Source of the DNA: Mobula hypostoma | Lineage: Eukaryota | Assembly (NCBI RefSeq): GCF_963921235.1 | Contig: NC_086106.1 | Coordinates: forward strand, 21,328,001 to 21,392,000 | Reading direction: 5' to 3' | DNA: 64,000 bases | Shown here: positions 1-59,022 of the stretch, one piece after another | Layout of the letters: each line of letters begins with the position of its first letter | Numbering within the stretch: position 1 is the stretch's first letter | The notes under the pieces: model-generated | The model's database searches: none | What the model was told of the DNA's origin: nothing | Seen by the model: only the letters and a program-made list of their open reading frames with translations | Position numbers and translations under genes: made by a program

Positions 1-202
1 ACAGAGTTGCGCTGCCTTTACTTGAATTGTACACTTCCAAAGAAGAGCTCATGGCTGGCCATCCAAACGCGTTATTTTTTTCTTTCAATCTTATAGCTTC
101 TATCTACGTAATCTCAAACAAGCTTGATATATTCAACAAAACTACCCTTGAACGCACTTCGATGAAACTGCATTTTTAAATTTCGTCAGTTCACTTATTT
201 AC

Positions 203-257
203 TGACTGTAACAGTGACCGTGGTCCCGGTTCCACCTCGATAGCTGGTGTAGTAATT
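203..257 (-). CDS. NAR-TCR J segment, cassette B1 (NYYTSYRGGTGTTVTVTV)
   Basis: G-T-G-T-T-V-T-V J motif; GTAAAT donor at 202-197; RSS with heptamer CACCGTG (258-264), 23-nt spacer and nonamer ACACAAATC (288-296). Confidence 0.85.
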
Positions 258-627
258 CACCGTGATCCGACACTCAGTCTCACTGGTACACAAATCATCC
301 TCAGCTCAGTCTTATCAGTAGCCGACATTGGACTGTGTACAACTATTGCAGACTTTTTCAAAAATGAACAACAGCATGCAGTGTTCCAGAAACCCCTGTG
401 AAACTACCTGTGAAAAAGACAACAATAAGATGACCGTTTCATACATTCCGAATGTCAGTTTCCTAAACTTCATCAAATGTGAAAGAAAAAATCCTGAAAG
501 GTGCAAAGTACAATGGAATTCACACGATCGCAGCGTTAAAATAATCCCACATATGATTCTATTTCCTGACTCCAGAATATATACTCATTCGGTGTTGAAA
601 GTTTTTGTTCGATTATTCTTCTTTGTG

Positions 628-641
628 CATATTCCCAAATC
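628..641 (-). other. NAR-TCR D segment, cassette B1 (GATTTGGGAATATG), 12-RSS on both sides
   Basis: On + strand: AGTTTTTGT (600-608), 12 nt, CTTTGTG (621-627), 14-nt core, CACAGTG (642-648), 12 nt, weak nonamer TTCAAATCT. Lies between J and V. Confidence 0.75.
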
Positions 642-1017
642 CACAGTGTTTCATGTCAGGTTCAAATCTCTGAATGGACTGAGCTGGAGGTAACAGCTTC
701 CCAACTACTATTCCTGCTTCCGTCCTGTTGGAGCAGGGTAACATCTGAAGTAACGGTTTGGGAAGGAGAAAACTCATTATCACTTGTTGTTCGCTATAAA
801 CAGAATTGTGAAAGGCAGTTTTGTATATGCAAATTCAGAAGAGAAGAGAAAGAGTATGAACAGCAAACTTCATGTCCCATTGCAAAATATACTGTACGGA
901 ACGCAGGGGAAATGCCTCGTTTAATTACGGACAGATTAACTCTGTTCCTTAAGCTGTTGATGGGATAAATGGCAGCGAGTATTTGAGCACAGCAGGAATC
1001 GCTTTCCAAGCTCTGTG

Positions 1018-1303
1018 CATATTCAGGTTTATATTCAAATTTACAGAAATAGGTGGCGCTGCCCTTAATTCCAAGATTAAAACATTTTAAGGATAATTAT
1101 GCTTTATTTTCCGTTTTAATAAATCTTCCTCCTGTGTAGATACGCTGCCCGTCCGTTCCTGGCTGCGACTGTTTGAAGAACTGTCCGTTTATAAATTAAT
1201 CGCTTGATGATTTTTTTACGGAACGTGCATTTGATGGTGAAAGACAAGCATTATATCTTCACCACCGCTGTCGGACTCTGGATGACTGATTGATCGAAGA
1301 AGA
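1018..1303 (-). pseudogene. NAR-TCR V exon, cassette B1 (pseudogene)
   Basis: Reads ..QSVIQSPTAVVKI*CLSFTIKC..GQFFKQ..TGGRF..SATYFCKFEYKPEY. TAA at 1251-1253, +1 frameshift in a 7-A run in CDR1, further TAA stops. RSS heptamer CACAGAG (1011-1017) with 23-nt spacer. Confidence 0.85.
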
Positions 1304-1449
1304 CTGGAAATTAAGAAATGCAGAAGGGAAGCGTCATCAGCTGTGAAATTCGCAGGACGACTAATACTATAACTTCAAGAAATACCTAATCTACCTGTTC
1401 AGTATTATAACTAACCCGCATACTGCAGAAATTTGCCTACGGTATTCAC

Positions 1450-1492
1450 GCCGAAAGCAGATGCAGAGAATGACATTCACGAGGATGTTCAT
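1450..1492 (-). CDS. Leader exon of NAR V B1 (MNILVNVILCICFR)
   Basis: 43-nt ATG-initiated hydrophobic exon, phase-1 GTGAAT donor, same position and length as the leader in the other cassettes. Confidence 0.75.
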
Positions 1493-1779
1493 CGTTTCGT
1501 CTCCGGGTGTAAGATGGTTTATATGACGGAGAGCTAGACTGCTGTGTTACGTTATTCCTCAGAACAGGACAGAGACACTTCTGACGCTTACTGTTCTAGA
1601 TTTATCCAATTGCTGCGCACATTCCGAATTACCTTCTTGCGAGAAAACGTATGGTTTATTGAACAATAGCTATGGTTCTGTTTCCACTCAAGCTTTTTGG
1701 AACTGATGAGAAAGGTCCTCCATGACAGTTTTAACGTCAATACAAGTAATTCATCATCTTTTTGGATAAATATGAAAAG

Positions 1780-2040
1780 ACCAGGCATCTGCGAAAAGGA
1801 AATAACAACATTGAAACGTGCCAGTGTGAAAACATATCTGATCAAGATAACTCAGTGTCACTAGGTTTATAAATATATCATCAGCCAGATCCGCATGTTT
1901 TCAGGGATGGAGTAAAGGTGATAGAGAACAGTGGGAAAGGTGTAGAACAAGTGAGTTTTATGGAACTGTGGAAGCTGGAGGCAATGTTAATGTAATTTAC
2001 GAGGTCAAAAAGGGTACATGTATTATGCCAGTAGTTACCA
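1780..2040 (-). mobile_element. Old Penelope-like RT remnant upstream of leader B1
   Basis: Homologous by eye to 7190-7510, which translates to a YMDD-containing RT fragment. Confidence 0.5.
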
Positions 2041-2139
2041 GATGTGGCTATTCTTTTTAACCCCTTCAGAGGCAACGGTTGAATAAACAGGTCACAGGGT
2101 ACAAGGTATTTAATTCGGATAAGAACAAAGAACAGATTT

Positions 2140-3430
2140 ACTAAGTTGATTTTCTGAGTCTGCTCCGCTATTCAATCATGGCTGATCCATTCTTTTCCCT
2201 CCTATACCCCATTTTCCGGCATTCTCCAGTAATCGGTGATGTTATGTCTAATCCAAAACCTATCAATCTCTCTCTGAAATGCACCCAGCGACCTGAAAAA
2301 GACGGCTACATGTTGAAATAACTTGCACATATCACCACCCACTGGCAAAGTAAATTCCTGCGCATCTGTTTGTTTGTTTTTTTTTTGAATGGCCGCCCCT
2401 CTATCCTAAGGCTGTCCACCAATGGAAACATCCTTTCCACATCTACTTTGACAAGGACTTTCAACATTCGGAAGTTTTGAATGAGATCCCCTGCATCCTT
2501 TTAAAACCCAGAGAGTACAGACCCTCAGCCATCAGAAAAATGATAAAGAAAATCCCAGTATGTTAACCGTTCCATTCCTGGAATCACCAATGTGAACCGA
2601 CTGTGGACCATCTTCAATAGCAGCACACATTTTCTAAAATGAGCAACCCAAAATAGTTCACAATACGCCAGATGAGAACTCACTAGTGCCTCATAAATTC
2701 TCAGCATCACATTCCTGCAATTCCATTCTGGCCCTCTGAAATGAATGCCAACATTACAGTTGCCTTTTTAACCACCGAATCAGCCTACAAGTTAACATTC
2801 AGCTGGTTCTGCATACAGACTCCTAAGTATTTCTGCATCTCAGAGTTTTGGATTTTTCCCCGTTTAGAAACTGCTCCATTTATTATTCCATTTGCCACTT
2901 TCCTGCAGATTTTCCTCATCAGTCTGAGTCCTTCTGCATCCGACCTGTTTCCGCAACACTTACTGCCTCTGCAATTATGTTTATATCTTCTGCAAACCTG
3001 ACCAAAAAGGTAACTATTTTATATTCAAAATCATGTATATACAAGATAAACAGAACTGGTCCCAAAACCTATCCATGCGGAAAACCGCCAGTCCTGGCAC
3101 GCAAACTGACAAAGATACATTATTACCATTCCCCGCCCCCTTCCAATCAACCAATGCTCTAACCTTCTTGTAATACAACAAGCACTTAACTTGGTAAGCA
3201 GGCTCGTGTTGGCACCTTTTCAACGGCCTTCTGAACAGTCCTCATATGCAACATCTACTGCACCCCCTTTATCTATCTTACTTGTAATCCCCTCAATGCA
3301 TTACAACAGGTTTGACAGGCAAGGTTTTCCCGTAAGGGAACCAGACTGACTTTGTAATATCTTCTCACGTGTCACAAATTGCTCCATCGCCTCAGACTGT
3401 TCAACTGACTCTAACATCTTCCCAATCACT
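2140..3430 (-). mobile_element. Degenerate CR1 LINE fragment (ORF2 3' part and 3' UTR)
   Basis: ORF-track 2525-2710 'IYEALVSSHLAYCELFW' resembles the CR1 RT C-terminal motif LY+ALVRPHLEYCVQFW. Paralogous copies at ~21340-22500 and ~47430-49600. Ends approximate. Confidence 0.7.
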
Positions 3431-3439
3431 AAATAGACC

Positions 3440-3720: not shown

Positions 3721-4110
3721 TATATAAATATATAGTCCAATGAGCTACTACCAGAATGTGTAAGTATGACTTCCGCTGTCTGAATGTGAATGAATGAGCC
3801 TGGAGTCATAACGTCCGGTCCGTTTTTGTGCTGGTCTCAATAAAGCCATTATCTGAAGCATATGTATAAAGTTCTTCTTGCTTGTCATCATGGGCCGCAT
3901 ATTCGCGATAATATATTTGTTGCGGTGGCGGCTGACAGGAGACTGTTTTGGAACTGAAAGTTCTTAGAAGTGTATTCATGTAATTAGCAGTGAGTTGCCC
4001 CGTTGGCTGATGTTGAGGACGGAACGTTAGAATTTAACATCTGCGTCATTTCGAATATGACAGATTAGTGCAGGATTTTCAGAATCTTCTCTGCGGTCTT
4101 TGTGCTCGTA

Positions 4111-4149
4111 CATTTTTGTACTACTCCTCTCATATTTTGAAACACTGTG
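4111..4149 (-). other. Second (tandem) 23-RSS downstream of supporting V A1
   Basis: CACAGTG (4149-4143), exactly 23 nt, ACAAAAATG (4119-4111). Confidence 0.7.
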
Positions 4150-4165
4150 TAATCCACAACATTGA

Positions 4166-4204
4166 GGTTTTTGTGCATCTCGCTTCCTCATGTCTATCAC
4201 TGTG
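4166..4204 (-). other. 23-RSS of supporting V A1
   Basis: Consensus CACAGTG (4204-4198), 23 nt, ACAAAAACC (4174-4166). Confidence 0.95.
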
Positions 4205-4510
4205 CCCTTCGGCGACTGATGGCACATTGGTACAAGGCCGAGTCTCTCACTTGCAGTTTCGAGATCTTTAACATGCTGATTTTATTTTCCCGATCGACAG
4301 AACCGAAGAATTGTCCTTCGGCAGCATTTTGCTGCTCCTGATCCCCAGCGGTATGCGTCTGGAGCGTAAATTCTGGAGGCTCTGCTTTTAGCTGCCGGTA
4401 CCAATGTATCGTGTATGGACAAAACCCGGAATATTCGCACTTTACTGTGACGACGTCATCAGGATAAGAATATTGTAGAGGAGGACTCTTGGCCACGAGG
4501 GATATAGGAT
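4205..4510 (-). CDS. Leaderless 'supporting' TCR-delta V exon of NAR-TCR cassette A1 (intact)
   Basis: Open 306-nt exon after a TTCAG acceptor: (D)PISLVAKSPP..VKC EYSGFCPYTIH WYRQ..DSALYQC AISRRR. Both canonical Cys and Trp present, extra CDR1 Cys, no leader exon recognised in the J-V intron, consensus 23-RSS. Confidence 0.9.
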
Positions 4511-5660
4511 CTGAAGGAATTTAAAAGAGGCATCACAATTACTATACTATCGTTACTGGTTTGGCCACGCATAGGAATAGGTGAAGGATCCATACCGACT
4601 GGTTTCGTTCACAATATGTCCAAAATGTTTTTCGTGCACTTGGGAATTATTCCAGCGACTTTCTGCGCAAGAGAAATATTTGCTATATGGCGCAGGAGGA
4701 GAATGGAAATTAATAGGACAAGTGGACTGACTGCATGGAAATGCTGGGGTATGTGAAACCATGGGAATTAATTTAAAAAAAATGTAGAACATTTGTGAAA
4801 TATTCTCAGAGAGCCAACATCCAACTATTTGGAGGATCTACCTATTCCATTGTGAACACTTCTACTTTTTTCTTTCTTTCATGTTTGTAACTGAAAGGCG
4901 ATTAGCAATTCTAACATATTGGGTGTGTTGCTTAGGTTTCCAGCATCAGCGGATTTCCGATTTTATTCGCTTTCGCTGTGTCAACTCATCCTCAATTTCT
5001 TTTTTACAGACCGGGCAGTTTCCATATGTTTTTTCTTTCTTTTTTTTCTTCTTTTTTTTTCTTCTTTTCCAATTCTGCTTGTTCTACTTTTGCTGCATAA
5101 AGTATATATGCTGTAAGCTTAAAATGTTCTCACACAGTCTGACAGATTTCGCTTGCATTTCAGTTTACATTTAGGCGTCAGACTCAGTTGTAACTTAGCG
5201 TCTCCCCTCACTAATTACATCGGCAGCATGTGCTTGATATAAAAAAAGAGAAAAAATCCTTAATCTCCCTATATGCAGCTTCTGAGGATCTATACTAAAA
5301 CGATCACTGACCGAAGGACACCCCTGAGAAGTTCCATCAACTTGATCGCCCTAGGTGCTGACCCAAGAGCAGTATTGCTCCGCTGCCCCTAAAACAGCTA
5401 AGACAAAATAAATACACGCTCTGTATATGGGAATGATCCGCTGCGTCTCATTTCGCACTGCCTAGTTACAGTTATGCCCTGTTTTTACTTCTATGTTACC
5501 GTTCCTAAGACGAAGGTATGACTGGCAATCTAAGCATATTATTTTGCATCAAACCCAACATAGCTTCTGTAACAGAAATATCAATCAAAGTTGAAATTTT
5601 CAGCTAAACTGCTCTAACATGCACATTCAAAAGGAAGCTTCATAAAGTTGAAAAACTTAC

Positions 5661-5718
5661 CGACTGTGACAGTGACTGTAGACCCGGTTCCATCTTCATA
5701 GTAAGTACCCCAGTAACA
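5661..5718 (-). CDS. NAR-TCR J segment, cassette A1 (CYWGTYYEDGTGSTVTVTV)
   Basis: GTAAG donor at 5660-5656. RSS: CACCGTG (5719-5725), 23 nt, ACAAGAATC (5749-5757). Phase-1 end joins the supporting V in frame (G|AT = Asp). Confidence 0.88.
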
Positions 5719-6086
5719 CACCGTGATCCGGCTCTTAATCTCACTGGTACAAGAATCATCCTCAACTCAGTCTATTCAGCAGCAATCAATGGAGGGCGTT
5801 GAAACATTCCAGACTTTTTAAACAAAAACAACTGCATTCAGTGTTTCACAAACACAGATGAAGCCGGCCATGAGAGTTAATCTCTAAAAAATGACCTCAT
5901 CTTAGTTTCCGTACGCCGGTTCTCTAACCTGCAGCAAATATCAAAAACTTCCCTGAAAGAGGCAAAAGACTATGGAATTCAGCTGATAACTGTGCGAATG
6001 TAATGTGACATATGATTCTATTCCCCTACTCCAGAATATATAATTTAAAGGGGGCAAAAGTTTTTGTTCGATTATCTTCCGTTGTG

Positions 6087-6100
6087 TGCATTCCAAAATC
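6087..6100 (-). other. NAR-TCR D segment, cassette A1 (GATTTTGGAATGCA), 12-RSS on both sides
   Basis: On + strand: AGTTTTTGT (6059-6067), 12 nt, CGTTGTG (6080-6086), core, CACACTG (6101-6107), 12-13 nt, weak nonamer. Core is open in all three frames (DFGM / ILEC / FWNA). Confidence 0.78.
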
Positions 6101-6477
6101 CACACTGTTTCATGTCAAGTTCAAATTGCAGGAAACTGTTGGGCAGGAGAAAACATCTTCCCAGCTGCTATTCCAGCTTTCATGCTGTTGGAGCAGGGTC
6201 CCATGTGAAGTAGGAGATTGGAAAGTGGAAGACACATTCTCACTTGCTGTTCACTGCACAGTTCCTGGGAAAGGTGGTTTTCCAATCAAATACAGAAGAA
6301 GAAAATAACTACCGTCTGAACAGACAACAGCCAGTCCCATTGCAAACTAGACTGTATGATACGTAGACGAAGAACCTTCAGAAATTACCAGCACATGAAC
6401 TTCGCTGCTTCAGATGTGGATGGGATAATTTCCATCTCCTGTTTGAGTACGGTGGTGATCCCTTTCCAAACACTGTG

Positions 6478-6768
6478 TGTTCCATTTATATTCAGCTTTA
6501 CAAAAATAGGTGGCACTGTCGTCAACTTCAAGATTCATAATTTTCAGTGTAAATATCATTTCGGCGTTATTTTGCGCAATTATAAATCTCGTTCCTGTGG
6601 AGATCCGTGTCCATCCCGTTTTTAGCGGTGTTTGTTTGAAGAACTGTCCGGTTACAAACTCATAATATCCCGTCGAACCAGTACGAAAAGTGCATGTGAT
6701 GGTCAGAGACTGGCATTCACTTTTCGTCACAGCTGTCGGGCTCTGGGTCACGGACTGGCTGAAGAGGT
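6478..6768 (-). CDS. NAR-TCR V exon, cassette A1 (the only intact IgNAR-like V in the window)
   Basis: Open 291-nt exon: LFS-QSVTQSPTAVTKSECQSLTITC TFRTGSTGYYEFVTGQ FFKQTPLKTGWTRISTGTRF..LKIMNLEVDDSATYFC KAEYKWN. The short FR2-to-RF span means no CDR2, as in IgNAR V. RSS: CACAGTG (6477-6471), 23 nt, CTCAAACAG. Confidence 0.9.
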
Positions 6769-6914
6769 CTGGAAATTAAGAATAAGGACAAGCGGAACAG
6801 CATTAGCTGTAACACGCAATAGAGAGCTAACACGATGACTTCAGGGATTCTGCGTACACTCGTTGAGTTTCGTATTTAACTCGAATATTACGTAAATTTG
6901 TGAACAGTACTCAC

Positions 6915-6957
6915 GGTCAAAGCAGAGGCAGAGTGTGACATACAAGAGAAATTTCAT
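6915..6957 (-). CDS. Leader exon of NAR V A1 (MKFLLYVTLCLCFD)
   Basis: 43 nt, GTGAGT donor. Splices in frame to give the signal peptide MKFLLYVTLCLCFDHLFS. Confidence 0.85.
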
Positions 6958-6982
6958 CGTCTCGTCTCTGGGTGTCAGCTGG

Positions 6983-6988
6983 ATTATA
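6983..6988 (-). promoter_or_regulatory. Possible TATA-like box of the NAR V promoter
   Basis: TATAAT about 26 nt upstream of the ATG. TATAAA sits at the same offset in B cassettes (e.g. 1518-1523). Positional inference only. Confidence 0.3.
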
Positions 6989-7189
6989 CAGCCGCTAGAG
7001 AGGCTGCTGTGGCAGGTTCTTTCTCAGAACTGTGCAGAGACACCTCAGCCGGTTTCTGTTCCAGATTGATTCAATTGCTTCACTGTTTCCGAATTATCTG
7101 ATGTGGGAAAAAGCGTGAGATTTGATACACAATATCTGTGGTTCCCTTTTCACGCAATTTCCTTGCAACTGATGAGAAAGGCAGGGGTA

Positions 7190-8331: not shown

Positions 8332-8385
8332 GATTATTATTATTATTATTATTATTATCATCATCATTATTATCATCATCATCAT
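8332..8385. repeat. (ATT)n/(ATC)n microsatellite
   Basis: Directly visible. Orthologous tracts at ~29040-29070 and ~60440-60530. Confidence 0.9.
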
Positions 8386-12340: not shown

Positions 12341-13094
12341 CCAGTTCCCGTGCAATCCTTTAAAATACGCTTTAATATACCAAACTTTTCATTAGTTCAA
12401 TGGACAACCTCACACAGACGAGAAAAGGGCAATAGATAAAGTTGATAAATATTGAAGGCTGAGAGGATTAGCAAGTGAGTTCTGTTCAGGAGTTCTCTAT
12501 TTTTGGTGGTTGTTAATTTTCGAATTTATTACTTTATTGCGCTGAGTTCAATAGCTTTCGTGTTTTGGATAATACGGAGGTCATACTTGTTGGCACTGTC
12601 GCGTAACCGCCTACCTGCCGTTCTGTAGGGTTTTTCAGGTTACGTCCTTCACTATTTGTGGCAGTCTGTAGCAGGTCTGGTCCTGGGCAACACAGAAACT
12701 CAACATCGCGGCGTTAATCGCGAAGATTACGAGGCATGCTATCCACGGGAGAGTGCAAGAGTGGATTTAGAATTCTCCTGCACTCGGAAGGCATAGTGTG
12801 GTATTAGTTGGAAGTTACTATGCCCACATTTCAAGAATTATAGATGCTCCTTGAGTCACTGTTTCGAGACCCTCACTCTTTGTGACATTATAAATTAACG
12901 TGTGATTTTGTGTAACGATTTTAATGTGAAGGTAGATAAATTGCATAACGAATAGTGGCATTGTGTACCGAGTAGAAAGTTTTCACATGACGGTAAATTA
13001 CCGCAGATATCTGAAATAGTGTTGTTTTGTTTTTTTTTCACAGAGAATAGCGGTTGGCTGCAATTAATGCCGGAGATAGTAGAAACTTCATGAT

Positions 13095-14347
13095 AAACAC
13101 AAAATAATCTGCAGATGCTGCGATCAAAGCAACACTTTCAGTACGCTGGATGAACTCCGCAGATTGGGCAGCATCAGTCAGAAACGATGAGTCGACGTTC
13201 TGGGCCGAAACACTTCGTCAGGACTGAAGAATGAATGATGGTGAAGGATTTCAAGAATGCTTGTAGCTTCAGTTCAAGGACCAGAAATTTGAAAGGCAAA
13301 AGGTTGGGGGATAGGAAGCATTGACATCATAGCCCTGAAAACAATGGGTAGTAGAAGAAGGAGGAGGAACTTTGAGTGAGTTGGGGGAGGGGGTAGAGTG
13401 AAATAGGGGTAGAGGAAGGGAGGGGGAGGGAGGTACCGGACGCTGAAGAATTGTCTGTTCATACCAAGAGGCTGGAGACTACCTAGACGGTATATGAGGT
13501 TTTGCTCCTCCAACCGGAGTTTAGCCTCATCATAGCTGTAGATGAGGCCATGTATGCACATATCTGAATGGGAATGGGAAGCAGAGTTGAAATTGGTGGC
13601 TACCGGGAGATCCTGTCTGTTGTGGCGGACGGAATGGAGGTGCTCGAAGAAGCGGTCCCTCAATCTGCGTCGGGTTTCACCGATGTAGAAGAGGCCGCAC
13701 CGGGAGCACGAGATGCAGTAGATGACCCCAACAGACACACAAGTGATGTGCTGTGTCTCACCTGAAAGACTGTTTGGGGCCCTGCATGATTGCAGGAGAT
13801 TTGGTGTAGGGACGGGTGTAGCACTTACGCTTACAGGGATAAGTGACAGGTGGGAGATCAGTGGGGATGAACGTGTGGATAAGGGAGTCGTGGAGGGACA
13901 GATCCCTGCGGAAAGTGGAGACGGGTGGAGAGGGAAAGATGTGCTCAGTTGTGGGGTCCTGTTGAAGGTGGCGGAAGTTGCGGAGGATAATGTGCTGGAT
14001 CAGGAGGCTGGTGGGGTTGTAGGTAAGGACAAGGGGAACTCTGTCCCTGTTGTGTTTGCGGGACGATGGGTTGAGGACCGAAGTGCAAGAAATGGAGGAG
14101 ATCCGAGTCAGGACATCATTGATGACGGTAGAAGTGAAACCACGATCCTTAAAGAAACAGGACATTTGAGATCTCCTGGAACAGAAAGCCTCATCGTCGA
14201 AGCAGATGCGGCGGAGACGGAGGAACTGGGAATAGGGAATGGCATTTCTGCATGTGGGGGGGGGGTGGGAAGAGGTATACTTGAGGTAGTTATGAGAATC
14301 AGTGGGCTTGCAGAAGAAGAAAGAAAGAAAGAAAGAAAGAAAAGGAT
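13095..14347 (-). mobile_element. 5'-truncated Penelope-like element (RT C-terminus and GIY-YIG endonuclease)
   Basis: ORF 13274-13738 'VIYCISCSRCGLFYIGETRRRLRDRFFEH' is a GIY-YIG/PLE signature. Flanked by an 8-bp duplication TTCATGAT (13087-13094, 14348-14355). Empty site at 43546-43553. Confidence 0.85.
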
Positions 14348-14899
14348 TTCATGATGATATTAAAAAAGAAGATACTACTATGTAGACATATACTAGTATC
14401 TTTGAATGAGGGAATGTTTGGATAGATAGTCTACTGTTGTAAGTTAGTTGGCAGAATAAAGCCCGGCGAATGGTCCACAGTGTGTTGTTCTGTTTGATGT
14501 TCTCTGTTTTATGTTCCTTGAGATGGAGAACGGCAGATCGTCCGTCGTTTTGTTCTTTCTTAAATCCAAAAGTGTTATCATCATTTCATCATTTTGCTCA
14601 TGTTAAGTACATTTCATTTGTTATAACATTTTTCTTTTTCATGTTTTTGCAGGACTGGAGAAAACACTCTGTCAGCGTTTGTAAATGTGAGGTTGCTCAT
14701 TAGCTTCTGACAACCAGCAGAAAAATTAAAGGCACAGCCACTTATATCTTAACTCAAAGGAAGTTCAGCACCGAGCTTCCACAGGCGCACAAATTAATAC
14801 CCTGTCAATGTACTTGAGCAATAAACGAAACAGTCAAATTCGTTTTGAAAAATTATGAGTAGCATCTTAGTATAGAATTTTTTTCCATGTGGTTCATGT

Positions 14900-15174
14900 C
14901 AAATTACATACTTTAGAATGTGGAGAAGTATTCAGTTTCTGTAGTTACTAAGTCCGCTCTATTCCATATTAATAACATCTCACATCATTTCAAAACCGGA
15001 TTCCTATGTTCCCGCCATTATTTGCATAATGCTTTTCAGAAAAAAAAGGTACGAAATTGTCTTGAATTCAAAAAATCGATCTACACGAAAGATTCAAAAG
15101 AGACATTCCATGGATAGATGACCTTGTAGAGAATTAAAATGAGGAAAACGTTTTTTTTCACCAGGGATATAGGT
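14900..15174 (-). pseudogene. Heavily decayed supporting V of cassette B2
   Basis: Acceptor context TTCAG|ACCTATATCCCTGGTG matches the supporting-V start TTCAG|ATCCTATATCCCTCGTG. Adjacent 15.2-16.4 kb aligns to the A-type J-V intron. Exon body is frameshifted and barely recognisable, and its 3' end is uncertain. Confidence 0.55.
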
Positions 15175-24777: not shown

Positions 24778-24816
24778 CATTTTTGTTCTGCTCCTGTCAT
24801 ATTTTGAAACACTGTG
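24778..24816 (-). other. Second (tandem) 23-RSS downstream of supporting V A2
   Basis: CACAGTG (24816-24810), 23 nt, ACAAAAATG (24786-24778). Confidence 0.7.
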
Positions 24817-32091: not shown

Positions 32092-34428
32092 ACCTGATAT
32101 TGATGCCTAGTTTTCAGTAAATCTAATTACAAATGTATGAGAAAGGAGCGTGCCAAGTTTGATCATATGGAGATGACGGTAGAGCAGCGATACTTAACCA
32201 TGGAAATTGTGGTCTCTGCTTTCAAGTTTTTTCATAACAGCATAGATGGATTTTTGCCGAAGTTGCGTATAATATAAATATATGTGAAGTATTGGGTACT
32301 GCTGAGGAAGCAGGGAGCAGGGAGCATTCACCGGTGTTAGTATAAGGTACGACAATGCTCACATCAGTGCAGATGCAACAAGCAGTAGGTAACGGCATAA
32401 AATGTAATTTGAGCGCAGGAACAAAGTCGTTGAAAATATTCTAAATAAGGAGTGAATCCTCAGGGGTATACCAACTTGACAGTCCTACTTCCTGAATCCT
32501 TTACGGTGAACTTGAGTACTGAGACAGTACTAAAAATGGCAATGTCGGTTGTTAGGAACAAAATTAAAAAAAAACTGTGATGTAGCGTTATTTATTTATA
32601 AGAGGTAAATCGCACTAAATTTGGAGGTTGGAAAAAGTTGTGAGCTCAAAGTCCAAAGGAAGAGTGTGCTGGTTTCGAAGGGAGAAAAGTAGAAACTCAC
32701 GAGAATAACCTCGGGGCAGATATATTATCGTAGCTGGAGAGTTTGATGGTTCTTCGGATTAGAACATAACCAGCAACAATGTATTGAGTACAGTGGATGT
32801 GCTGATGATAGATCCAGCAGCGGGAAAGTGGAGGCTCAGATTTACTCAACCTCAGAAAAAAAGGACTGGCTTAGATTACAGTCGAAACTTTTTTTTTTTT
32901 TGCCAGATTATATATGTGTGGGATTTCTTGCCACAATGAGTTGGGGAAGACATGTACGGTAAATTTCAGGCTGAGGTAAATGTCTTCTCATGTCGTAAGT
33001 GTGTCAGAATTTAGACGGCGTTGTCAGGAGAATGCAGTTGAGATTTTATAGTTAATACAGTACGATCCAGTGGCAGAACCAATGTCTAGAGATCAAAAAG
33101 CCAAAATTTTCTCCCATGGTCTTACAGCCAGATACTGTGCATACCTCTGAAACACGCTTTAATGTACCACACTTTTCATTAGTTCGATGGACAGCCTCAC
33201 ACACAAGAGAAAGGTATAATAGATATAGTTGATAAATATTCAAGGCTGAGAGGATTAGCAAGTGCGTTTTGTTTAGAAATGCTGTACCTTTGGAGGTTGT
33301 TATTGTTCGAATTTATTACTTAATTGCGCTGAGTTTAATGGTTTTAATGTTTTGGATAATAGGGAGGTCATACTTGTTGGCACTGTCGCGTAACCGCCTA
33401 TGTCCCGTTCTGTAGGGTTTTTCAGCTTACGTCCTTCACTATTTGACGCAGTCTGTAGCAGGTTTGGTCCTCAGCAACACAGAAACTCAACATCGCGGCG
33501 TTAATCGCGAAGATCACGAGGCATGCGATCCACGGGAGATTGCAAGAGTGGATTTAGAATTCTCCTGCACTCGGAAGGCATTGTGTGGTATTAGTTGGTA
33601 GTTACTATGCTCACATTTCAAGAATTACAGATGCTCCTTGAGTCACAGTTTCGAGACTCTCACTCTTTGTGACATTAAAAAATTACAGTGTGTTTTTGCG
33701 TAATGATTTTAATGTGAAAGTAGATTAATTGCATAAAGAATAGTGGCGTTGTGTACCGAGTAGAAAGCTGTCACATGTTGCAACGTGACATAGAGAGGAT
33801 GTAGAGTTGGGTAGACAAATGAGAAATTACATTTCAAATGGGGAAATAAAAACTAGTGTGAAATAACCAACATTAGAAGTTCGTACGGGATTATGAGGAG
33901 GATTCGTTGAGGCGCAGTGTTACAGATGGATACTCGGCTTCCACGTCAGTATATTTCCCATTGCTGCCACGCAAGTGAATTTAATAAATGATATGGTGTA
34001 CTGGATATTGAACCGGATATTGATTTTAAAAGCTGCGAGTAGATACTCTGCATCTCACAAAGATCCGGTGAGACAACACTAAGAGAATTGCATTAATTTC
34101 TGAGTACCTTATGATAGAAAGGATGCCTAAAGTTTAGTGAGAGAGCTCAGAAGTATCACCATGAGGCCTCAAAGATTAGAGAACGCCTTAAGCGGAAAAT
34201 TTGAAAACGTCTAGAGATTTTAATTTTGGAACAACGCTAATTGACAGTCAACTTAATATAAACGCGTACGACTATGAAAGGCAAAGATTTTCCTCAGGGC
34301 GGTAATGCTTCCGCTTATGGTTACTAGACGGACATTTACCGCAGATAACAGAAATATTGTGTTTTTTTTTTCCACACAGAATATTGGTTGGCTGATATTC
34401 ATGCCGGAGGTGGCAGAAGCTTCATGAT

Positions 34429-35613
34429 AAGCACAAAATAATCTGCAAATGTTGCGATCAAAGCAACACTTTCAGTACGCTGGATGAACTCAGCAGGTTG
34501 TACAGCATCAGTCTGAAACGATGAGTTGACGTTCCGGGCCGAAACCCTTCATCAGGACTGAAGAATGAAAGATGGTGAAGGATTTCAAGAATGCTTGTAG
34601 CTTCAGTTGAAAGACCAGCAATTTGAAAGGAAAATGGGTGGGGGACAGGAAGCATTGACATCATAGCCCTGAAAACAATGGGTAGTAGAAGAAGGAGGAG
34701 GAACCATGAATGAGCTGGCAGAGCGGGTAGAGAGAAATAGGGATAGAGGAATGGAGGGGGAAGGAGTTACCGGACGCTGGAGAATTCTATGGTCATACCA
34801 AGAGGCAAGAGACTACCTAGACGGTATATGAGGTTTTGCTCCTCCAACCGGAGTTTAGCCTCATCGTGGCTGTAGAGGAGGCCGTGTATGGACATATCTG
34901 AATGGGAATGGGAAGCAGAGTTAAAGTTGGTGGCTATCGGGAGATCCTGTCTTTTGTGGCGGTGCCCGACGAAGCGGTACCCCAATCTGCGTCGGGTTTC
35001 ACCGATGTAGAAGAGGCAGCAACAGGAGCATGGGGTGCAGTAGATGACCACAACAGACACAGAAGTGAAGTGCTGTCTCACCTGAAAGGACTGCTTGGGG
35101 CCCTGAATGGTTGCAGGAGATTAGGAGTAGGAACGAGTGTAGCACTTACGTTTACAGGGATAAGTGCCCGGTGGGAGATCAGTGTTGATGGACGTGTGGA
35201 TAAGGGAGTCGCGGAGTGAGCGATCCCTTCGGAAAGCGGAGAGTGGTGGAGAGGGAAAGATGTGCTCAGTTGTGAGGTCCTGTTGAAGGTGGCGGAAGTT
35301 GCGGAGGATAATGTACTGGATCCGGGGCTGGTGGAGTGGTAGGTAGGGATAAGAAGAACTCTGTCCCTGTTGTGGTTGCGGGAGGATAGGGTGAGTGTCG
35401 AAGTGCTGGAAACGGAGGAAATGCGGATAAGGGCATCATTGATGACGGTAGAAGGGAAAACACGATCTTTAAAGAAAGAGGACACTTGAGATGTCCTGGA
35501 ACGGAAAGCCTCATCCTCGGAGCAGATGAGCCGGAGACCGAGGAAATGGGAATAGGGAATGGCATTTTTGCATGTGGCGGGGTGGAGGAGGGATAGTTGA
35601 GGTAGTTATGAGA
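34429..35613 (-). mobile_element. Penelope-like element, paralogue of 13095-14347 at the same site
   Basis: ORF 34767-35081 GIY-YIG 'VIYCTPCSCCCLFYIGETRRRLG'. Same left flank TTCATGAT. Runs into the assembly gap. Confidence 0.85.
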
Positions 35614-35793
35614 NNNNNNNNNNNNNNNNNNNNNNNNNNNNNNNNNNNNNNNNNNNNNNNNNNNNNNNNNNNNNNNNNNNNNNNNNNNNNNNNNNNNNNN
35701 NNNNNNNNNNNNNNNNNNNNNNNNNNNNNNNNNNNNNNNNNNNNNNNNNNNNNNNNNNNNNNNNNNNNNNNNNNNNNNNNNNNNNNNNNNNNN
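35614..35793. other. Assembly gap (180 N)
   Basis: Run of N at the position of the (GAAA)n tract seen at ~14310-14345 in the paralogue. Confidence 0.99.
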
Positions 35794-36394
35794 TACTACT
35801 ATGTAGACATATAATAGCGTCTTTGACTGAGGGAATGTTTGGATATATAGTCTAGTGTTGTAAATTAGATGGCAGAACAAAGTCCGGCATAGGGTCCACA
35901 GTGTGTTGCCCTGTTTGATATTCTCTATTTTATGTTCCCTGAGATGGAGAACGGCAGATAATCCGTCGTTCTGTTCTTTCTTAACTCCAAAACAGTTATC
36001 ATCATTTCACCATTTTGCTCATGTTAAGTACATTTTATTTGTTATAAGAATTGTCTTTTTAATGTTTTTTGCAGGACAGGGGAAAACACTCTGTCAGCTT
36101 TTGTAAATTTGAGGTTGTTCATTAGCGTCTGACAACCAACAGAAAAATAAAAGGCACGGCCACTTTATCGTGACACAAAGGAAGTTCAGCACCGAGCTTC
36201 CACAGGCGCACAAATAAATAGCCTGTCACTATACTTGAGAAACAAATGAAACAGTTAAATTCGTTTTGAAAATGTATGAGTATCATCTTAATATAGATTG
36301 TTTCCATGTGGGTCATGTCAAATTACATACTTTAGAATGTGTAGAAGCATTGAGTTTCTGTAGTTACTAAGTCAGCTCTATTCCATATTAATAA

Positions 36395-37547
36395 CATAGA
36401 AACATAGAAACATAGAAAATAGGTGCAGGAGTAGGTGATTCGGCTCTTCGAGCCTGCACCGCCATTTATTATGATCATGGCTGATCATCCAACTCAGAAC
36501 CCGGCCCCAGCCTTCCCTCCATACCCCCTGACCACCGTAGCCACAAGGGCCATATCTAACTCCCTCTTAAACATAGCCGATGAACTGGCCTCAACAGGTT
36601 GCTGTGGCAGAGAATTCCACAGATTCACCACTCTCTGTGTGAAGAAGTTTTTCCTAATCTCGGTCCTAAAAGGCTCCCCCTCTATCCTCAGACTGTGACC
36701 CCTCGTTCTGGACTTCCCCAAAATCGGGAACAATCTTCCTGCATCTAGCCTGTCCAATCCCTTTAGGATCTTATACGTTTCAATCAGATCCCCCCTCAAT
36801 CTTCTAAATTCCAACAAGTACAAGCCCAGTTCATCCAGTCTTTCTTCATATGAAAGTCTTGCCATCCCAGGAATCAATCTGGTGAACCTTCTTTGTACTC
36901 CCTCTATGGCAAAGATGTCTTTCCTCAGATTAGGGGACCAAAACTGCACACAATACACCAAATGTGGTCTCACCAAGGCCTTGTACAACTGCAGTAGTCC
37001 CTCCCTTTCCCCTGTACTCGAATCCTCTTGCTATAAATGCCAGCATACCATTCGCCTTTTTCACCGCCTGCTGTACCTGCATGCCCACTTTCAATGACTG
37101 GTGTATAATGACACCCAGGTATCGTTGCACCTCCCCTTTTCCTAATCGGCCACCATTCAGATAATAATCTGTTTTCCTATTTTTGCCACCAAAGTGGATA
37201 ACTTCACATTTATCCACATGAAATTGCATCTGCCATGAGTTTGCCCACTCACCCAACCTATCCAAGTCACCCTGCATCCTCTTAGCATCATCCTCACTGC
37301 TAACACTGCCACCCAGCTTCGTGTCATCCACAAACTTGGAGATGCTGCATTTAATTCCCTCATCCAAGTCATTAATATATATTGTAAACAACTGGGGTCC
37401 CAGCACTCAGCCTTGCGGTACCCCACTAGTCACCGCCTGTCATTCTGAAAAGGTCCCGTTTATTCCCACTCTTTGCTTCCTGTCTGATAACCAATTCTCT
37501 ATCCACATCAATACCTTATTCCCAATACCGTGTGCTTTAAGTTTGCA
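36395..37547 (-). mobile_element. 5'-truncated CR1 LINE at a deletion junction
   Basis: ORFs 36494-36988 and 36930-37406 are CR1 RT (KFVDDTKLGG; YKALVRPHLVYCVQFWSP). (CATAGAAA)n tail at ~36395-36420. Confidence 0.92.
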
Positions 37548-46739: not shown

Positions 46740-46781
46740 GGCGAAAACAGATGCACAGCGTGACATTCAAGGGAAGTACAT
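46740..46781 (-). pseudogene. Leader exon B3, frameshifted
   Basis: 42 nt instead of 43. Reads ATG TAC TTC CCT TGA. Confidence 0.75.
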
Positions 46782-52800: not shown

Positions 52801-55800
52801 CCTACCTCTTCCCCGTAATCAATTCACCTGTTTCTGTCTGTAAGGGACCTACATTTGTCTTAACCAATCGTTTTCTTTCTTTTCACATACCTATAAAAGC
52901 TTTCACAGTCTTTTTTTTGTTTTGTTTGTTTTAATGTTCCGTGCCAGTTTTATCTCATAATCTCTTTTCTCTTTGCTAATTAAGCCCTTTGTCCTCCTCT
53001 GCTGGAGACTGAATTTCTCTCAGTCGTCAGGTTTGCCGCTTTTTCGGGCTAATCTGTATGTTTCTTCTTTGAAATTGATACTATCCCTAACATCCCTTGT
53101 CAGCCACGGATGGACCACCTTCGCTGGTTTATTCTTTTGCCAAACTGGAATGAACAATTGTTGTAGTTCATCCATGCAATCTTTAAATGTTTGCCATTGC
53201 ATATCCACCGTCAATCCTTTAAGTACCATTTGTCAGTCTATCTTAGCTAATTCACGTCTTATACCTTCAAAGTTAACCTCCTTTGAGTTCAGAACCTTTG
53301 TTTCTGAATTAACCATGTCAATCTCCATCATAAAGAAAAATTCCACCATATTATGGTCACTCTTACCCAAGGGGCCTCTCGCGATAAGATTGCTGATTAA
53401 CTCTTCCTCATTGCTCAATACCCCATCTAGAATGGCCAACACTTTAGTTGTTTCCTCGACATGTTGGTTCAAAAAACAACCGCATACATTGCAACAAATC
53501 CTCTTCCTCAGCAAACTTACCAATTTGGATCACCCAATCTATATGTAGATTGAAGTCACCCATTATAACTGCTGTTCCCTTAATGCACCCAGTTCTAATT
53601 TCCTGTTTAATGCTATTCCCAACTTCACTACTACTGTTAGGTGGCCTGCACAACAACATCCACCAGCGCTTTCTGCCCCTTAGTGTTATGCAGCTCTACC
53701 ACATCGATCCACATCCTCCCGGCTAATTACCTCCTTTCTATTGCGTTAATCTCCGCTCTAACCAGCAATGCTACCCCACCGCCTTTTCTTTCATTTCTAT
53801 CCCAACTGAATATTGAAAATACCTGAATGTTGAGCTCCCATCCTTGGTCACCCTGGAGCCATGTCTCTGTGACCCAACTATATCATATTCATTAATAACA
53901 CTCTGCACTTTTAATGCATCCACCTTATTACGAATACTCCTTGCATTGACACACAAAGCCTCCAGGCTTGCTTTTACAACACTCTTGGCCCTTATACAAT
54001 TATGTTAAAAAGTGGCCCTTTTTGATTTTTCCCCTGGATTTGCCGGCCTGCCACATGACTTTTTACCTTACTACTGTTTGCTTCTACCCTGATTTTACAC
54101 CCCTCTGTCTCTCTGCACATGTTTCCACCCCCCTGTTTTAAACTAACCTCCTCTATCCTCCACGCTGTAATTTGATTCCCACCCCGCAACCGTTCTAGTT
54201 TAAAGTCACCTCAGTAGCCTCCCCGCCAGGATATTGGTCCCCCTAGGATTGAAGTGTAACCCGCCCTTTTAGTACAGGTCACTGCTGCGCCAAAATAGGT
54301 CCCAGTTATCCAAAAACTGGAATCCCTACCCCATGCTTCAATCCCTCAGCCACGCATTTGTCCTCCACCTCAGTGCATTCCTACTCTCACTGTGCGTAGC
54401 ACAATAACGAATCGCGAGATTACTACCTTTCCAGTCCTTTTTCAAACTCCTTTCCTAACTCCCTATATTCTCCTTTCAGGACCCCTTCCCTGTTCGGACC
54501 TATGTCATTGGTACTTATATGTACCACGACCTCCGGCTGCTTACGCCCCCCCCCCCCACCCCCAAGGCCCCCTCATTGCAGGATATCTTGCACACGATCA
54601 GAAATATACCGGAACCTGGCACTAAGGAGGCAAACTACCATCCGGGTCTCTGGACTGCGTCCACAGAATCGCCTATCTGACGCCATGAAAATCGAGTCCC
54701 CTGTTACGACTGCCCTCCTCTTTCTTTCCCTACCCTTCTGAGTTACAGGGCCGGACTCTCTGCCGGAGGCACGGCCACTGTCGCTTCCCCCATGTAAGCT
54801 GCCCCAGCAACAGTACTCAAAAAGGAGTACCTACTGTCAAGGGGCACAGCCACCGGGGTACTCTCTATAACCTGACTCTTCTCCTTCCCCCTTCTAACCG
54901 TGACCCACTTGTCTGCCTCCCGTGGCTCCGGTGTGCTTACCTGCCTGTAACACCTCTCTATCAACTTCTCACTCCCTCTGACAAGGCAAAAGTCATCGAG
55001 CTGCAGCTCCAGTTCTCTAACGCGATCCCTTAGGAACTGCATCTCGGCGCACCTTGCGCAGATATCGACGTCCGGGAGACTTGTAGACTCCACGACCTCC
55101 CATATCCGGCACCGAGAACAACAAACTAACCTCACACTCATACTGCCCCTCTCCTCAAATAACAACAAAAGTTGAATACCAACCCTCTCCGCCTCGCCCG
55201 TTTCCACCTAAGCCCGTTGAGCCGAAGCCCTTAAGTCTTCCCTTTGCTGCCGGCTCACTCCGAAGCCTGCAGACTCCACAGCCCGCTGTGTAACGCTCTG
55301 TTCCTTTTAAATCTTCCAGGCGTCACTGCCTGACGTCACACGCTTGCGCAGTCCCGCCTGTCTGAACGCCGATGGAAAAAAAAGGAACAATTCAATAATG
55401 GTTTCTTCCGCACTCCCGCGCCAATTCTTAGATATCCTTCTCCGTATTAAACCCGAAGCAGGATTTCTGTCCTTTTAAATCTTTAACAATTCACTGTTTG
55501 ACGTCACACGCCTGCGCAGTCCCGCTTCTCTGAACGCCAATGGGAAAATGAAGCGAAAATTAAAAAAAAAACATGGCTTCTTCCGCACTCCCGTTCCGAT
55601 TCTCAGACTGCCTTCTCCAAATTAAACCCGAAGCAGGATTTATGTCCTTTTAAACCCTTTGAATGCAGTCAGTGATGAACAGGGTGAAAGGTTTCAATAG
55701 GACTTTGCAACCATAGAGAAGCGGTATCAGGGCAACTTCAATCAATTAATGTTGGCGGACTATTGTTGGGCACTGACAGGAGTGGCACCTGATACTGTGT

Positions 55801-56000: not shown

Positions 56001-56215
56001 AACGTCTTCGCTACAATATATTTGTTGCGGTGGCGGCTGACGGGAGACTCTGTTGGAACTGAAAGTTCTTAGAAGTGTATTCATGTAATTAGCAGTGAGT
56101 TTCCCCGTTGGCCGATGTTGAGGACGGAACGTTAGGATTTAACATCTGCGTCATTTCGAATATGACAGGTTAGTGCAGGATTTTCAGCATCTTTTCTACG
56201 GTCTTTGTGCTCGTA

Positions 56216-56254
56216 CATTTTTGTACTGGTCCTCTCATATTTTGAAACACTGTT
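56216..56254 (-). other. Second tandem 23-RSS behind supporting V A3, heptamer mutated
   Basis: AACAGTG (first C lost), 23 nt, ACAAAAATG. Confidence 0.6.
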
Positions 56255-56310
56255 TAATCCAAAACATTGAGGTTTTTTGTGCATCTCGCTTCCTCATGTC
56301 TATCACTGTG

Positions 56311-56616
56311 CCCTTCGGCGACTGATGGCACATTGGTACAAAGCCGAGTCGCTCACTTGCAATTTCGAGATCTTTAAGATGCTGATTTTATTTTCCCGAT
56401 CGACAGAACCGAAGAAGTGTCCTTCGGCAGCATTTTGCTGATCCTGATCTCCAGATGTATGCGTCTGGAGCATAAATTCTGGAGGCTCTGCTTGGAGCTG
56501 CCGGTACCAATGTATCGTGTATGGACAAAACCCGAAATATTCGCAGCTTAATATGGCGACGTCATCAGAATAAGGAGATTGTAGAGAAGGACTCTTGGCC
56601 ACGAGGGATATAGGAT
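56311..56616 (-). CDS. Supporting TCR-delta V exon, cassette A3 (intact)
   Basis: Open 306-nt exon (D)PISLVAKSPSL..LSC EYFGFCPYTIH WYRQ..DSALYQC AISRRR with TTCAG acceptor. CACAGTG, 23 nt, ACAAAAAAC. Confidence 0.9.
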
Positions 56617-57727
56617 CTGAAGGAATTTAAAAGATGCATCATAATTTCTATCGCTGCTGGATTGGCCACGAATAGGAATAGGTGAAGGATTCATACCGGC
56701 TGGTTTCGTTCACAAAATGTCCAAAATGTTTTTCGTGCACTTGGGAATTATTCCAGCGACTTTCGGCGCTGGAGAAATATTTGCTAGATGCTGCAGGAGG
56801 AGAATGGAAATTAATAGGAGGAGAAGTGGAATGACTGCATGAAAATGCTGGAATATGTGAAGCCATGGGAATTAATAAATAAAATGTAGAACATTTGTGA
56901 AATATTTTCAGAGAGCGAACACCCAGCGAGTTGGAGGATCTACCTGTTTTATTGTGAAAACCTCTATTTTTTTTCTTTCTTCCATGTTTGTAACGGAAAG
57001 ACGATTAGGAAATCTAATATTTTCGGTGCGTTGCTCAGGTTTCCAGCATCACCGGATTTCCGGTTGTATTCCCTTTCGCTGTGCCAAGTCATCCTCCTGT
57101 TTTTTAACACGCCAGGCAGTTTCCATATTTTTTTCTTTTCATTTCTGCTTGTTGTGCTTTTGCTGCATAAAGTATATATCCTGTCATCTTAAAATATTCT
57201 CACGCAGTCTGACGGATTTCGCTTGCATTCCAGTTTACACTTAGGCGTCAGACTTAGATGTAACCTGGCGTCTACCCTCACTAATCACATTGGTAGCTTT
57301 TGCTTGATATATGAAGAAACAACAGCCTTAATTTTCCAGCGTGCAGTTTCTGAGGATCTATACTAAAGCAATCACTGAGCGAAGTACACCCCAGAGAAGT
57401 TCCGACAAACTTGATAGCCCTTCGTGCTGGCCCAAGATTAGTATTACTCAGCTGCCCCCAAAAGAGCTGACACAAAATAAATACACGCACTGCACGAGAA
57501 TGAAACCCTGCGTCTCCTTTCGCACGGCCTCGTTACAGATATGCGCTGTTTTTACTTTTATAATACATTTCCTAAGACGAAGGTATGGCTGGCAATCTAA
57601 GCGTATTATATTGCATCAAGCCCAACATAGTTTCTATAACGGAAATATCAATCAAAGTTGAAATTTTCAGCTAAACTGCTCTAACATGCACATTCAAAAA
57701 GACGCTTCATATTGTTGAAATACTCAC

Positions 57728-57785
57728 CGACTGCGACAGTGACTGTGGACCCGGTTCCATCTTCATAGTAAGTTCTCCAGTAACA
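57728..57785 (-). CDS. NAR-TCR J, cassette A3 (CYWRTYYEDGTGSTVTVAV)
   Basis: GTGAGT donor. RSS: CACCGTG (57786-57792), 23 nt, ACAAGAATC. Confidence 0.87.
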
Positions 57786-58153
57786 CACCGTGATCCGGCT
57801 CTTAATCTCTCTGGTACAAGAATCAACCTCAACTCAGTTTATTCATCAGCAATCATTGGACAGGGTTGAAACATTCCAGACTTTTAAAACAAGAGCAATT
57901 GCATTCAGTGTTTCACAAACACAATTGAAGCTATACATGAGAATTAACCTCTGTAAAATAACCTCATCATAGTTTCCGTATGTCCGTTCCCTAAACTGCA
58001 TCAAATATCAAAAACTTCCCTGAAAGAGGTAAAAGAAAATTGAATTCAGCTGATCACTATGCGAATGTAATGTGACATATGATTCTATTCCCCTACTACG
58101 GAATATATACCTTAAAGGGGCCAGACGTTTTTGTTCGATTATCTTCCGTTGTG

Positions 58154-58167
58154 TCCATTCCAATATC
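58154..58167 (-). other. NAR-TCR D, cassette A3 (GATATTGGAATGGA), 12-RSS on both sides
   Basis: CGTTTTTGT, 12 nt, CGTTGTG, core, CACACTG (58168-58174). Confidence 0.78.
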
Positions 58168-58543
58168 CACACTGTTTCATGTCAAGTCCAAATTGCAGGA
58201 GACTGTTGGGACGGAGAAAACATCTTCCCAACTGCTATTCCAGTTTCCACGATATTGGAGCAGGATCCTATCTGAAGTAGGAGATTGGGAAGGGGGAGAG
58301 TCATTCTCAGTTGCTGTTCAGTGCACAGTTCCTGGGAAAGGTGGTTTTCCATGCAAATACAGAAGAGAAACTAACTAGTGTATGAACGGACAACATCCAG
58401 TCCCATTGCAAACTAGAATGTACGGGACGCAGAAGAAGAACCTTCTGAAATTACCAGCATATGAACTCCGCTTCTTCAGATGTTGATGGGATAATTTCCA
58501 TCTGCTGTTTGAGTACGGTTGTGATCCCTTTCCAAACACTGTG

Positions 58544-58834
58544 TGTTCCATTCATATTCCGCTTTACAAAAATAGGTGGCACTGTCGCCAACTTCAAGAT
58601 TCATAATTTTCAGTGTAAATATCATTTCGGCGTCATTTTGCGCAATTATAAATCTCGTTCCTGTGGAGATCTGTTCCCTTCCCGTTTTTCGCGGTGTTTG
58701 TTTGCAGAAATGTCCAGTTATAAACTTATAGGTTCCCGTCCATCCAGTACGGAAAGTGCATGTGATGGTCAGTGACTAGCATTCAGTTTTCGTTACAGCT
58801 GTCGGGCTCTGGGTCACGGACTGGCTGAAGAAGA
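58544..58834 (-). pseudogene. NAR-TCR V exon, cassette A3, with a single nonsense codon
   Basis: 291-nt exon open except CAG to TAG at 58776-58778 (TKTEC*SLTITC). Acceptor, both canonical Cys and the 23-RSS are intact. Confidence 0.85.
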
Positions 58835-58979
58835 CTGGAAATGAATAATAAGGAGAAGCGAAACAGCATGAGATGTGAGACATACAAGAGGGCAACACCA
58901 TGACTTCAAGGATTCTGCATACTCTAGATCAGTTTCGTGTTTAACTCGAATATTACGTAAATTTGTGAACAGTACTCAC

Positions 58980-59022
58980 GGTCAAAGCAGAGGCACAGTG
59001 CGACATACAAGAGAAATTTCAT
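58980..59022 (-). CDS. Leader exon A3 (MKFLLYVALCLCFD)
   Basis: 43 nt, GTGAGT donor. Confidence 0.83.

Follow-up and report, generated by a model that had tools for sequence, protein, structure and literature searches.

A germline array of NAR-TCR-type cassettes in Mobula hypostoma, with RNA-contig support for a J-to-V splice

Results

We analyzed a stretch of 64,000 bases from Mobula hypostoma (contig NC_086106.1, positions 21,328,001 to 21,392,000; the whole stretch is called the window below), which is very probably a germline segment of the cartilaginous-fish locus for NAR-TCR, a T-cell receptor (TCR) chain with an antibody-like variable (V) domain on top. Searches of the whole window by tblastn with both V exons of one cassette, designated A1, and by blastn with five A1 parts located six copies of a block consisting of a leader, a NAR-type V exon (NAR V, or first V), a diversity (D) segment, and a joining (J) segment, all on the minus strand and with two types, A and B, alternating. 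The same searches located three full copies and one 3' fragment of a second, leaderless V exon (supporting V), also all on the minus strand. The original prediction, made from the letters, had described six leader-V-D-J blocks on this strand, and the searches together with alignments recovered all six. It had also placed a leaderless V with its own recombination signal sequence (RSS) of the 23-nucleotide-spacer type (23-RSS) about 1.15 kb behind the A-type J segments; such an exon was found in three of three A-type cassettes at 1.11-1.15 kb, the J-to-supporting-V introns being 1150, 1142, and 1111 nucleotides (nt) long in A1, A2, and A3, respectively.

In cassette A1 (Table 1), the leader exon was followed by an intron of 146 nt. 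The D segment was flanked by a 5' RSS with the heptamer CAGTGTG and a weak nonamer at 12-13 nt, and by a 3' RSS of the form CACAACG-12-ACAAAAACT. The RSS spacers along A1 had the order 23 / 12-12 / 23, which obeys the 12/23 rule. The J segment was translated to CYWGTYYEDGTGSTVTVTV with one spare base; this spare G and the first two bases of the supporting V exon formed a GAT codon, and the supporting V exon ended in ...DSALYQCAISRRR. All junctions of the leader, V exon, J, and supporting V were in frame, and the in-frame splicing of these four parts claimed by the original prediction was confirmed both by the phases in the sequence and by the contig joints described below. A1 is the sole cassette of the window able to make a full chain from its own parts.

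The Pfam V-set domain was found above threshold in all four intact V exons. In a PDB sequence search, the best single-domain matches of the A1 NAR V were shark VNARs (top E = 2e-12, 50 bits, residues 4-96, with many more down to 1e-8), and individual antibody VL or VH domains scored about 24 bits; the VNAR and V-set matches identified the N-terminal V as IgNAR-type, the class of short V domains related to VNAR that lack a conventional second complementarity-determining region. A search for homologous proteins with the A1 NAR V gave no candidate, the collection and its length window being ill suited to such a query. The A1 NAR V had a Cys in the a-b loop (KSEC; ...TKSECQSLTITC...) and FFKQ (GQFFKQTP) in place of WYRK, so that the canonical Trp was absent. 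A Cys in the first complementarity-determining region (CDR1) of the supporting V was found in three of three full copies (CEYSGFCPYTIHWYRQ). The hallmarks of NAR-TCR are a NAR V with a leader and an a-b loop Cys but without the Trp of WYRK, and a leaderless supporting V with a CDR1 Cys (PMC1845163). All of these hallmarks were present in the window.

To the region 4100-7000 we aligned assembled contigs of four public runs, whose RNA type was guessed and which came from two studies with two species labels. Four coding pieces of the region carried contig cover, namely leader, first V exon, J, and supporting V exon. The only other cover was on a 33-nt repeat at 4915-4947, and the introns, the V-D spacer, and the D-J spacer were otherwise bare in the four runs. 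The exon-only cover and the GT..AG joints argued strongly that the runs were RNA. These RNA-like contigs document the two V(D)J events as well as the splice from J to V. The leader was joined to the V at 6915|6768, and the NAR V exon was represented by contigs with 0 differences from A1, as the supporting V exon was by exact contigs. V-to-J junctions connected the V end (6478-6493) with the J (5706-5718), skipping 760-778 nt and carrying 9-36 letters found in neither flank; four of five were in frame by frame count on the contigs, and one insert held a D core, TTTGGAATGGA, that was closest to the A3 copy of D. The joint of the J to the supporting V at 5661|4510, which has GT..AG on the gene strand, was found in contigs of two runs and as loose ends in a third. 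One 168-nt contig had 0 differences on either side of this joint, and it therefore derives from A1 or an identical allele.

The contigs also continued beyond the supporting V, which was joined at 4205, exactly where its coding sequence gives way to the heptamer, to ...(D/H)NTKETKLIF. Two distinct junctions were found (TCGAT... and AGGACCAT...), both in frame. The KLIF ending of the joined J is presumably like that of delta J segments. A J of the NTKETKLIF type was absent from the window when three mismatches were allowed, and neither a constant-region (C) exon nor a delta D or J was found within the window. Because the J joined to the supporting V was absent, the suggestion of the original prediction that D-delta, J-delta, and C-delta lie off-window fits the data. 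All contigs that reached the 5' end of the supporting V continued into the NAR J, so there was no sign of a separate supporting-V leader. Variant letters in the contigs fell at sites where A1 alone differs from the supporting V of A2 and A3, and were assignable to no single copy. Exact words of the A2 supporting V were present at a fraction of 0.13-0.25 in the RNA-like runs, which conserved stretches common to the paralogues could explain.

Several further observations were made around A1 and its paralogues. The 33-nt stretch at 4915-4947 lies in the J-to-supporting-V intron and occurred in contigs of four of four runs, all of which went on into sequence unrelated to the gene; rather than belonging to this gene, the stretch probably represents a short repeat or a transcript piece from elsewhere. 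A second heptamer-23-nonamer site (CACAGTG ... ACAAAAATG) was present on the minus strand at 4111-4149 in A1 and 24778-24816 in A2, 55-64 nt past the 23-RSS that belongs to the supporting V itself. In A3 the second site was weaker, at about 56215-56255, with a degenerate heptamer read by eye from the alignment. Since the expressed junctions start at 4205, the nearer RSS is the one in use. The J segments of all three A-type cassettes begin with TGT (5718-5716, 26386-26384, and 57785-57783), and those of the B type with AAT or AGT; a full-length A-type J would accordingly add an extra Cys to the third complementarity-determining region of the NAR V. Some 90 nt in front of each leader (6958-7050 and its paralogous counterparts) were kept across A and B types and include a TATAA-like motif (GTATAATCC / ATATAAACC) roughly 35 nt ahead of the ATG. 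This conserved stretch is probably a promoter that the dead B copies have retained.

In the other cassettes, the original prediction of a tandem array of NAR-TCR cassettes held for the six blocks, and it had overlooked that five of the six first-V genes were dead, with only that of A1 intact, and that the B-type cassettes had no supporting V. In A2 the NAR V had lost its acceptor (AC for AG), carried two stops, and had +1 and -1 indels that compensate each other; the A2 J was intact with a Gly to Arg substitution in the J motif. The NAR V of A3 had one TAG stop at a Gln codon of A1, and the rest of the A3 cassette was intact. B1, B2, and B3 had a TAA stop at the same V codon (ATA TAA TGC) in addition to further stops. 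A full supporting V was found in none of the three B-type cassettes, the region downstream of B1 lying off-window. In B3 a 1-nt deletion in the leader led to a frameshift and a stop, and downstream of this cassette only the J-to-supporting-V intron remained. The B2 remnant kept the acceptor and about 19 nt of the supporting V exon, followed by unrelated DNA. The fourth supporting V, at 39740-39478, is shown by the surrounding homology (upstream part 43553-41003) to be what is left of a fourth A-type unit after deletion of its V-D-J.

Identity among the A copies was 79-87% in introns and spacers, 88-91% in the first V, and 88-93% in the supporting V; it was 97% in the V RSS, 92-94% in the D with its RSSs, and 97-100% in the supporting-V RSS. 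The ratio of nonsynonymous to synonymous substitution rates (dN/dS) of the supporting V between A copies was about 1 (0.95-1.12). In neutral simulations at the observed divergence, the 303-nt open reading frame (ORF) stayed free of stops in only 0.19 (A2) and 0.37 (A3) of cases. From the density in the adjacent intron, 2.1-2.6 indels were expected per 306 nt, and none was observed in the supporting V of A2 or A3. Over the same period, the first V of A2 gathered two stops and two indels.

A self-comparison of the window revealed paralogous blocks of kilobase length with 83-87% identity; between A-type and B-type cassettes, identity was only 69-72%. This difference indicated that an A+B pair was duplicated after the two types had diverged, and the array is a unit of one A-type and one B-type cassette that was duplicated several times. 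The TAA stop common to B1, B2, and B3 at one V codon dates the death of the B lineage to a time before duplication of the unit. The window contains a single run of 180 N (Table 1); on the gene strand, the supporting-V fragment ends 3.7 kb before this run and the A2 leader starts 7.9 kb after it. The flanks of this gap are collinear, on the same strand, with one paralogous unit (34327-35613 with 12989-14297, and 35794-36397 with 14373-14978), in which 75 nt separate the corresponding flanks. Because the true gap length may differ from 180 N, the number of cassettes counted between 39478 and 27628 is a lower bound.

Outside the cassettes, an ORF of 154 amino acids at 13274-13738 on the minus strand gave a weak match to a GIY-YIG nuclease, its E value of 1.3e-4 lying at the Pfam cutoff, and the paralogue of this ORF, near 34600-35100, adjoins the gap; the ORF may be a remnant of a Penelope-like retroelement within the duplicated unit. 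Pfam scans of long ORFs outside the cassettes gave nothing beyond this match, and Rfam gave zero matches at the gathering threshold over the entire window. A tandem repeat with a 175-nt unit (2.1 copies, 80% identity) lies at 55302-55654, some 600 nt past the supporting-V RSS of A3.

Table 1. Coordinates of the cassette features in the window (position 1 is the first base of the stretch)
Feature	Position	Strand	Details
Cassette order, coordinates descending	A3 59022-56272; B3 46781-45487; supporting-V fragment 39740-39478; gap; A2 27628-24842; B2 20699-19399; A1 6957-4166; B1 1492-203	-	
Leader start codons	59022 (A3), 46781 (B3), 27628 (A2), 20699 (B2), 6957 (A1), 1492 (B1)	-	B2 has GTG for ATG
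Leaderless V exons with 23-RSS	4510-4205, 25186-24881, 56616-56311	-	3' of the A1, A2, and A3 J segments
A1 leader exon	6957-6915	-	43 nt, phase 1; ATG 6957-6955; donor GT 6914-6913 (GTGAGT)
A1 NAR-type V exon	6768-6478	-	Intact; 3' end ...DSATYFCKAEYKWN
A1 V RSS	6477-6440	-	Heptamer CACAGTG, 22-nt spacer, nonamer ACTCAAACA
A1 D with flanking RSSs	6129-6059	-	D = 6100-6087, GATTTTGGAATGCA
A1 J 23-RSS	5757-5719	-	Nonamer GATTCTTGT, 23 spacer, heptamer CACGGTG
A1 J segment	5718-5661	-	58 nt, ...YYEDGTGSTVTVTV; phase-1 donor GT 5660-5659 (GTAAGT)
A1 supporting V exon	4510-4205	-	Leaderless, intact; starts at acceptor AG (ttccttcag); Cys in CDR1 (GFCPY)
A1 supporting-V 23-RSS	4204-4166	-	Perfect CACAGTG-23-ACAAAAACC
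A2 leader-V-D-J	27628-26329	-	Leader intact; V 27439-27149 dead; D 26767-26753 intact; J 26386-26329
A2 supporting V and 23-RSS	Exon 25186-24881, RSS 24880-24842	-	ORF intact
A3 leader-V-D-J	59022-57728	-	Leader intact; V 58834-58544; D 58167-58154; J 57785-57728
A3 supporting V and 23-RSS	Exon 56616-56311, RSS 56310-56272	-	ORF intact
B3 pseudo-cassette	46781-45487	-	V 46593-46303 with stops; D 45925-45912; J 45541-45487, damaged heptamer
B2 pseudo-cassette	20699-19399	-	Start codon lost (GTG); V 20509-20216 with stops; D 19839-19826; J 19453-19399, donor GT to GC
B2 remnant of J-to-supporting-V intron	16497-15140	-	Lower bound approximate
B1 pseudo-cassette	1492-203	-	Leader intact; V 1303-1018 with stops and deletion; D 641-628; J 257-203
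Fourth supporting V, 3' fragment and RSS	39740-39478	-	3' 60% of exon; stops; second conserved Cys lost
Assembly gap	35614-35793		Intergenic; no exon, RSS, or reading frame of the cassettes crosses the gap

Discussion

The NAR-TCR architecture proposed by the original prediction was supported by the VNAR-like first V, the 23 / 12-12 / 23 arrangement of RSSs, the phase-1 J donor leading to a leaderless V, and the non-canonical pair of Cys residues. According to the RSS reading and the contig junctions, a D and a J with 12/23-compatible RSSs belong to the NAR V, which is separately rearranged; the NAR J is spliced to the leaderless supporting V through GT..AG contig joints; and the supporting V has a 23-RSS of its own and undergoes a second V(D)J join, as seen in contigs continuing from 4205. 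Splicing of this J to a constant region, which had been named beforehand as the outcome that would speak against a NAR-TCR, was replaced in the contigs by the J-to-supporting-V joint. A working cassette would be assembled in two events. The RAG recombinase would join the NAR-type V, with its 23-RSS, to the one D, which has a 12-RSS on each side, and to the J with its 23-RSS; in a separate event the leaderless supporting V, through its 23-RSS, would be joined to a TCR-delta-type D and J far downstream and off-window. In the transcript the leader is spliced to the NAR V-D-J exon, and splicing across some 1.15 kb links the NAR J donor with the supporting V(D)J exon; a splice to the constant region presumably follows. 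The product would be a three-domain chain carrying an unpaired antibody-like V on top. Its constant region would be C-delta, it would pair with TCR-gamma, and a disulfide may connect the a-b loop Cys of one V domain with the CDR1 Cys of the other.

NAR-TCR was described in the nurse shark in 2006 (Criscitiello, Saltis & Flajnik, as cited in PMC1845163, PMC5931798, and PMC12227049) and in the elephant shark in 2007 (PMC1845163), and counts among the standard features of the TCR-delta locus in cartilaginous fishes (PMC5931798, PMC6795676); chromosome-scale maps show NARTCR V genes in three sharks and one stingray (PMC12227049). The design has thus been known since 2006, and the present stretch is a further member of a known system. 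The stretch resembles the NAR-TCR of the nurse shark and other cartilaginous fishes in having an IgNAR-like V with leader, D, and J upstream of a leaderless TCR-delta V with its own RSS, in its two independent V(D)J events, in the repeated cassettes of the locus, and in the a-b loop Cys and missing canonical Trp of the NAR V and the CDR1 Cys of the supporting V. There is no difference in kind; however, most copies here are pseudogenes, the B sub-lineage has lost its supporting V, and the RSS of each supporting V is followed, at a distance of about 55 nt, by another RSS-like site. With IgNAR heavy-chain clusters the array shares the V fold and sequence type (the VNAR matches in PDB), the logic of V-D-J clusters, and the 23/12 RSS spacing, whereas an IgNAR V, which draws on several D segments, leads into constant exons of its own and yields a secreted product; a cassette of the present array has one D, and splicing connects its J with a further V. 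The TCR-mu chain of marsupials and monotremes likewise has three domains, its N-terminal V being antibody-like and unpaired and resting on a supporting V (PMC3457774), but TCR-mu is convergent, with VH-related V genes, its own constant gene, and, in marsupials, a germline-joined supporting V.

Four points weigh against the assignment to NAR-TCR. The term "delta" would rest on the family hallmarks and the KLIF-type J, the contigs stopping short of the constant region. The supporting V was matched about equally by antibody and TCR V domains in PDB, which leaves it untyped by sequence comparison. The runs are guessed to be RNA, and their short contigs can be chimeric between paralogues. Finally, the dead first V in five of the six copies makes most of the array unable to work from its own parts. 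This last point leads to the alternative, which we regard as a serious minority reading, that the array is a decayed relic in which everything but A1, including the intact supporting V exons of A2 and A3, is unused DNA that has not yet acquired disabling mutations. The dN/dS of about 1, the broken first-V genes of A2 and A3, and the low presence of exact A2 supporting-V words in the RNA-like runs agree with decay. However, a reading frame free of stops was an infrequent outcome of the neutral simulations for A2 and a minority outcome for A3, the two or so indels expected per supporting V were missing from both, the RSSs of A2 and A3 were 97-100% conserved, and the fragment at 39740-39478, which is truly abandoned, has gathered several stops. 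These comparisons provide modest evidence that the D-J-supporting-V modules of A2 and A3 may still be useful. Their upkeep would be explained if an intact upstream first V could join them: an upstream NAR V of the same orientation, with its 23-RSS, might be joined by deletion to the 12-RSS of a downstream cassette's D, so that the array would act as a small translocon and not as closed cassettes. We consider such inter-cassette joining rather unlikely, and the dN/dS of about 1 counts against it.

Two other explanations of the germline NAR-TCR array fared much worse. That the repeated cassettes are an artefact of assembly, through collapsed or expanded haplotypes or a mis-join at a gap, is suggested by the gap within the span of the array, but is highly improbable in view of copies that are only 83-87% identical over kilobases, far below allelic similarity, that carry copy-specific mutations, and that include a collinear counterpart of the gap flanks. 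Still less credible is an IgNAR antibody cluster or another immunoglobulin heavy-chain mini-cluster instead of TCR genes: the first V is closest to VNAR domains and cartilaginous-fish immunoglobulin genes are V-D-J clusters (PMC1845163), yet an IgNAR cluster has the order V-D-D-D-J followed by IgNAR constant exons, whereas each cassette here has one D, no constant-region exon after the J, a J donor that RNA contigs splice to a second V exon, and a V without the canonical Trp and with an a-b loop Cys, the marks that set the NAR-TCR V apart.

To this known system the stretch adds a census of pseudogenes, in which one of the six cassettes works, a history for the A/B unit, and RNA contigs that support the two rearrangements; it also offers a clean annotated germline example of NAR-TCR cassettes in which the unusual J-to-V splice has contig support. 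For the evolution of the family, it indicates that an A+B pair was duplicated with the B lineage already dead, and that decay proceeds more quickly in first-V genes than in the D-J-supporting-V modules that follow them. The existing picture of NAR-TCR is unchanged, and the example is of use for annotating the TCR-delta repertoires of cartilaginous fishes.

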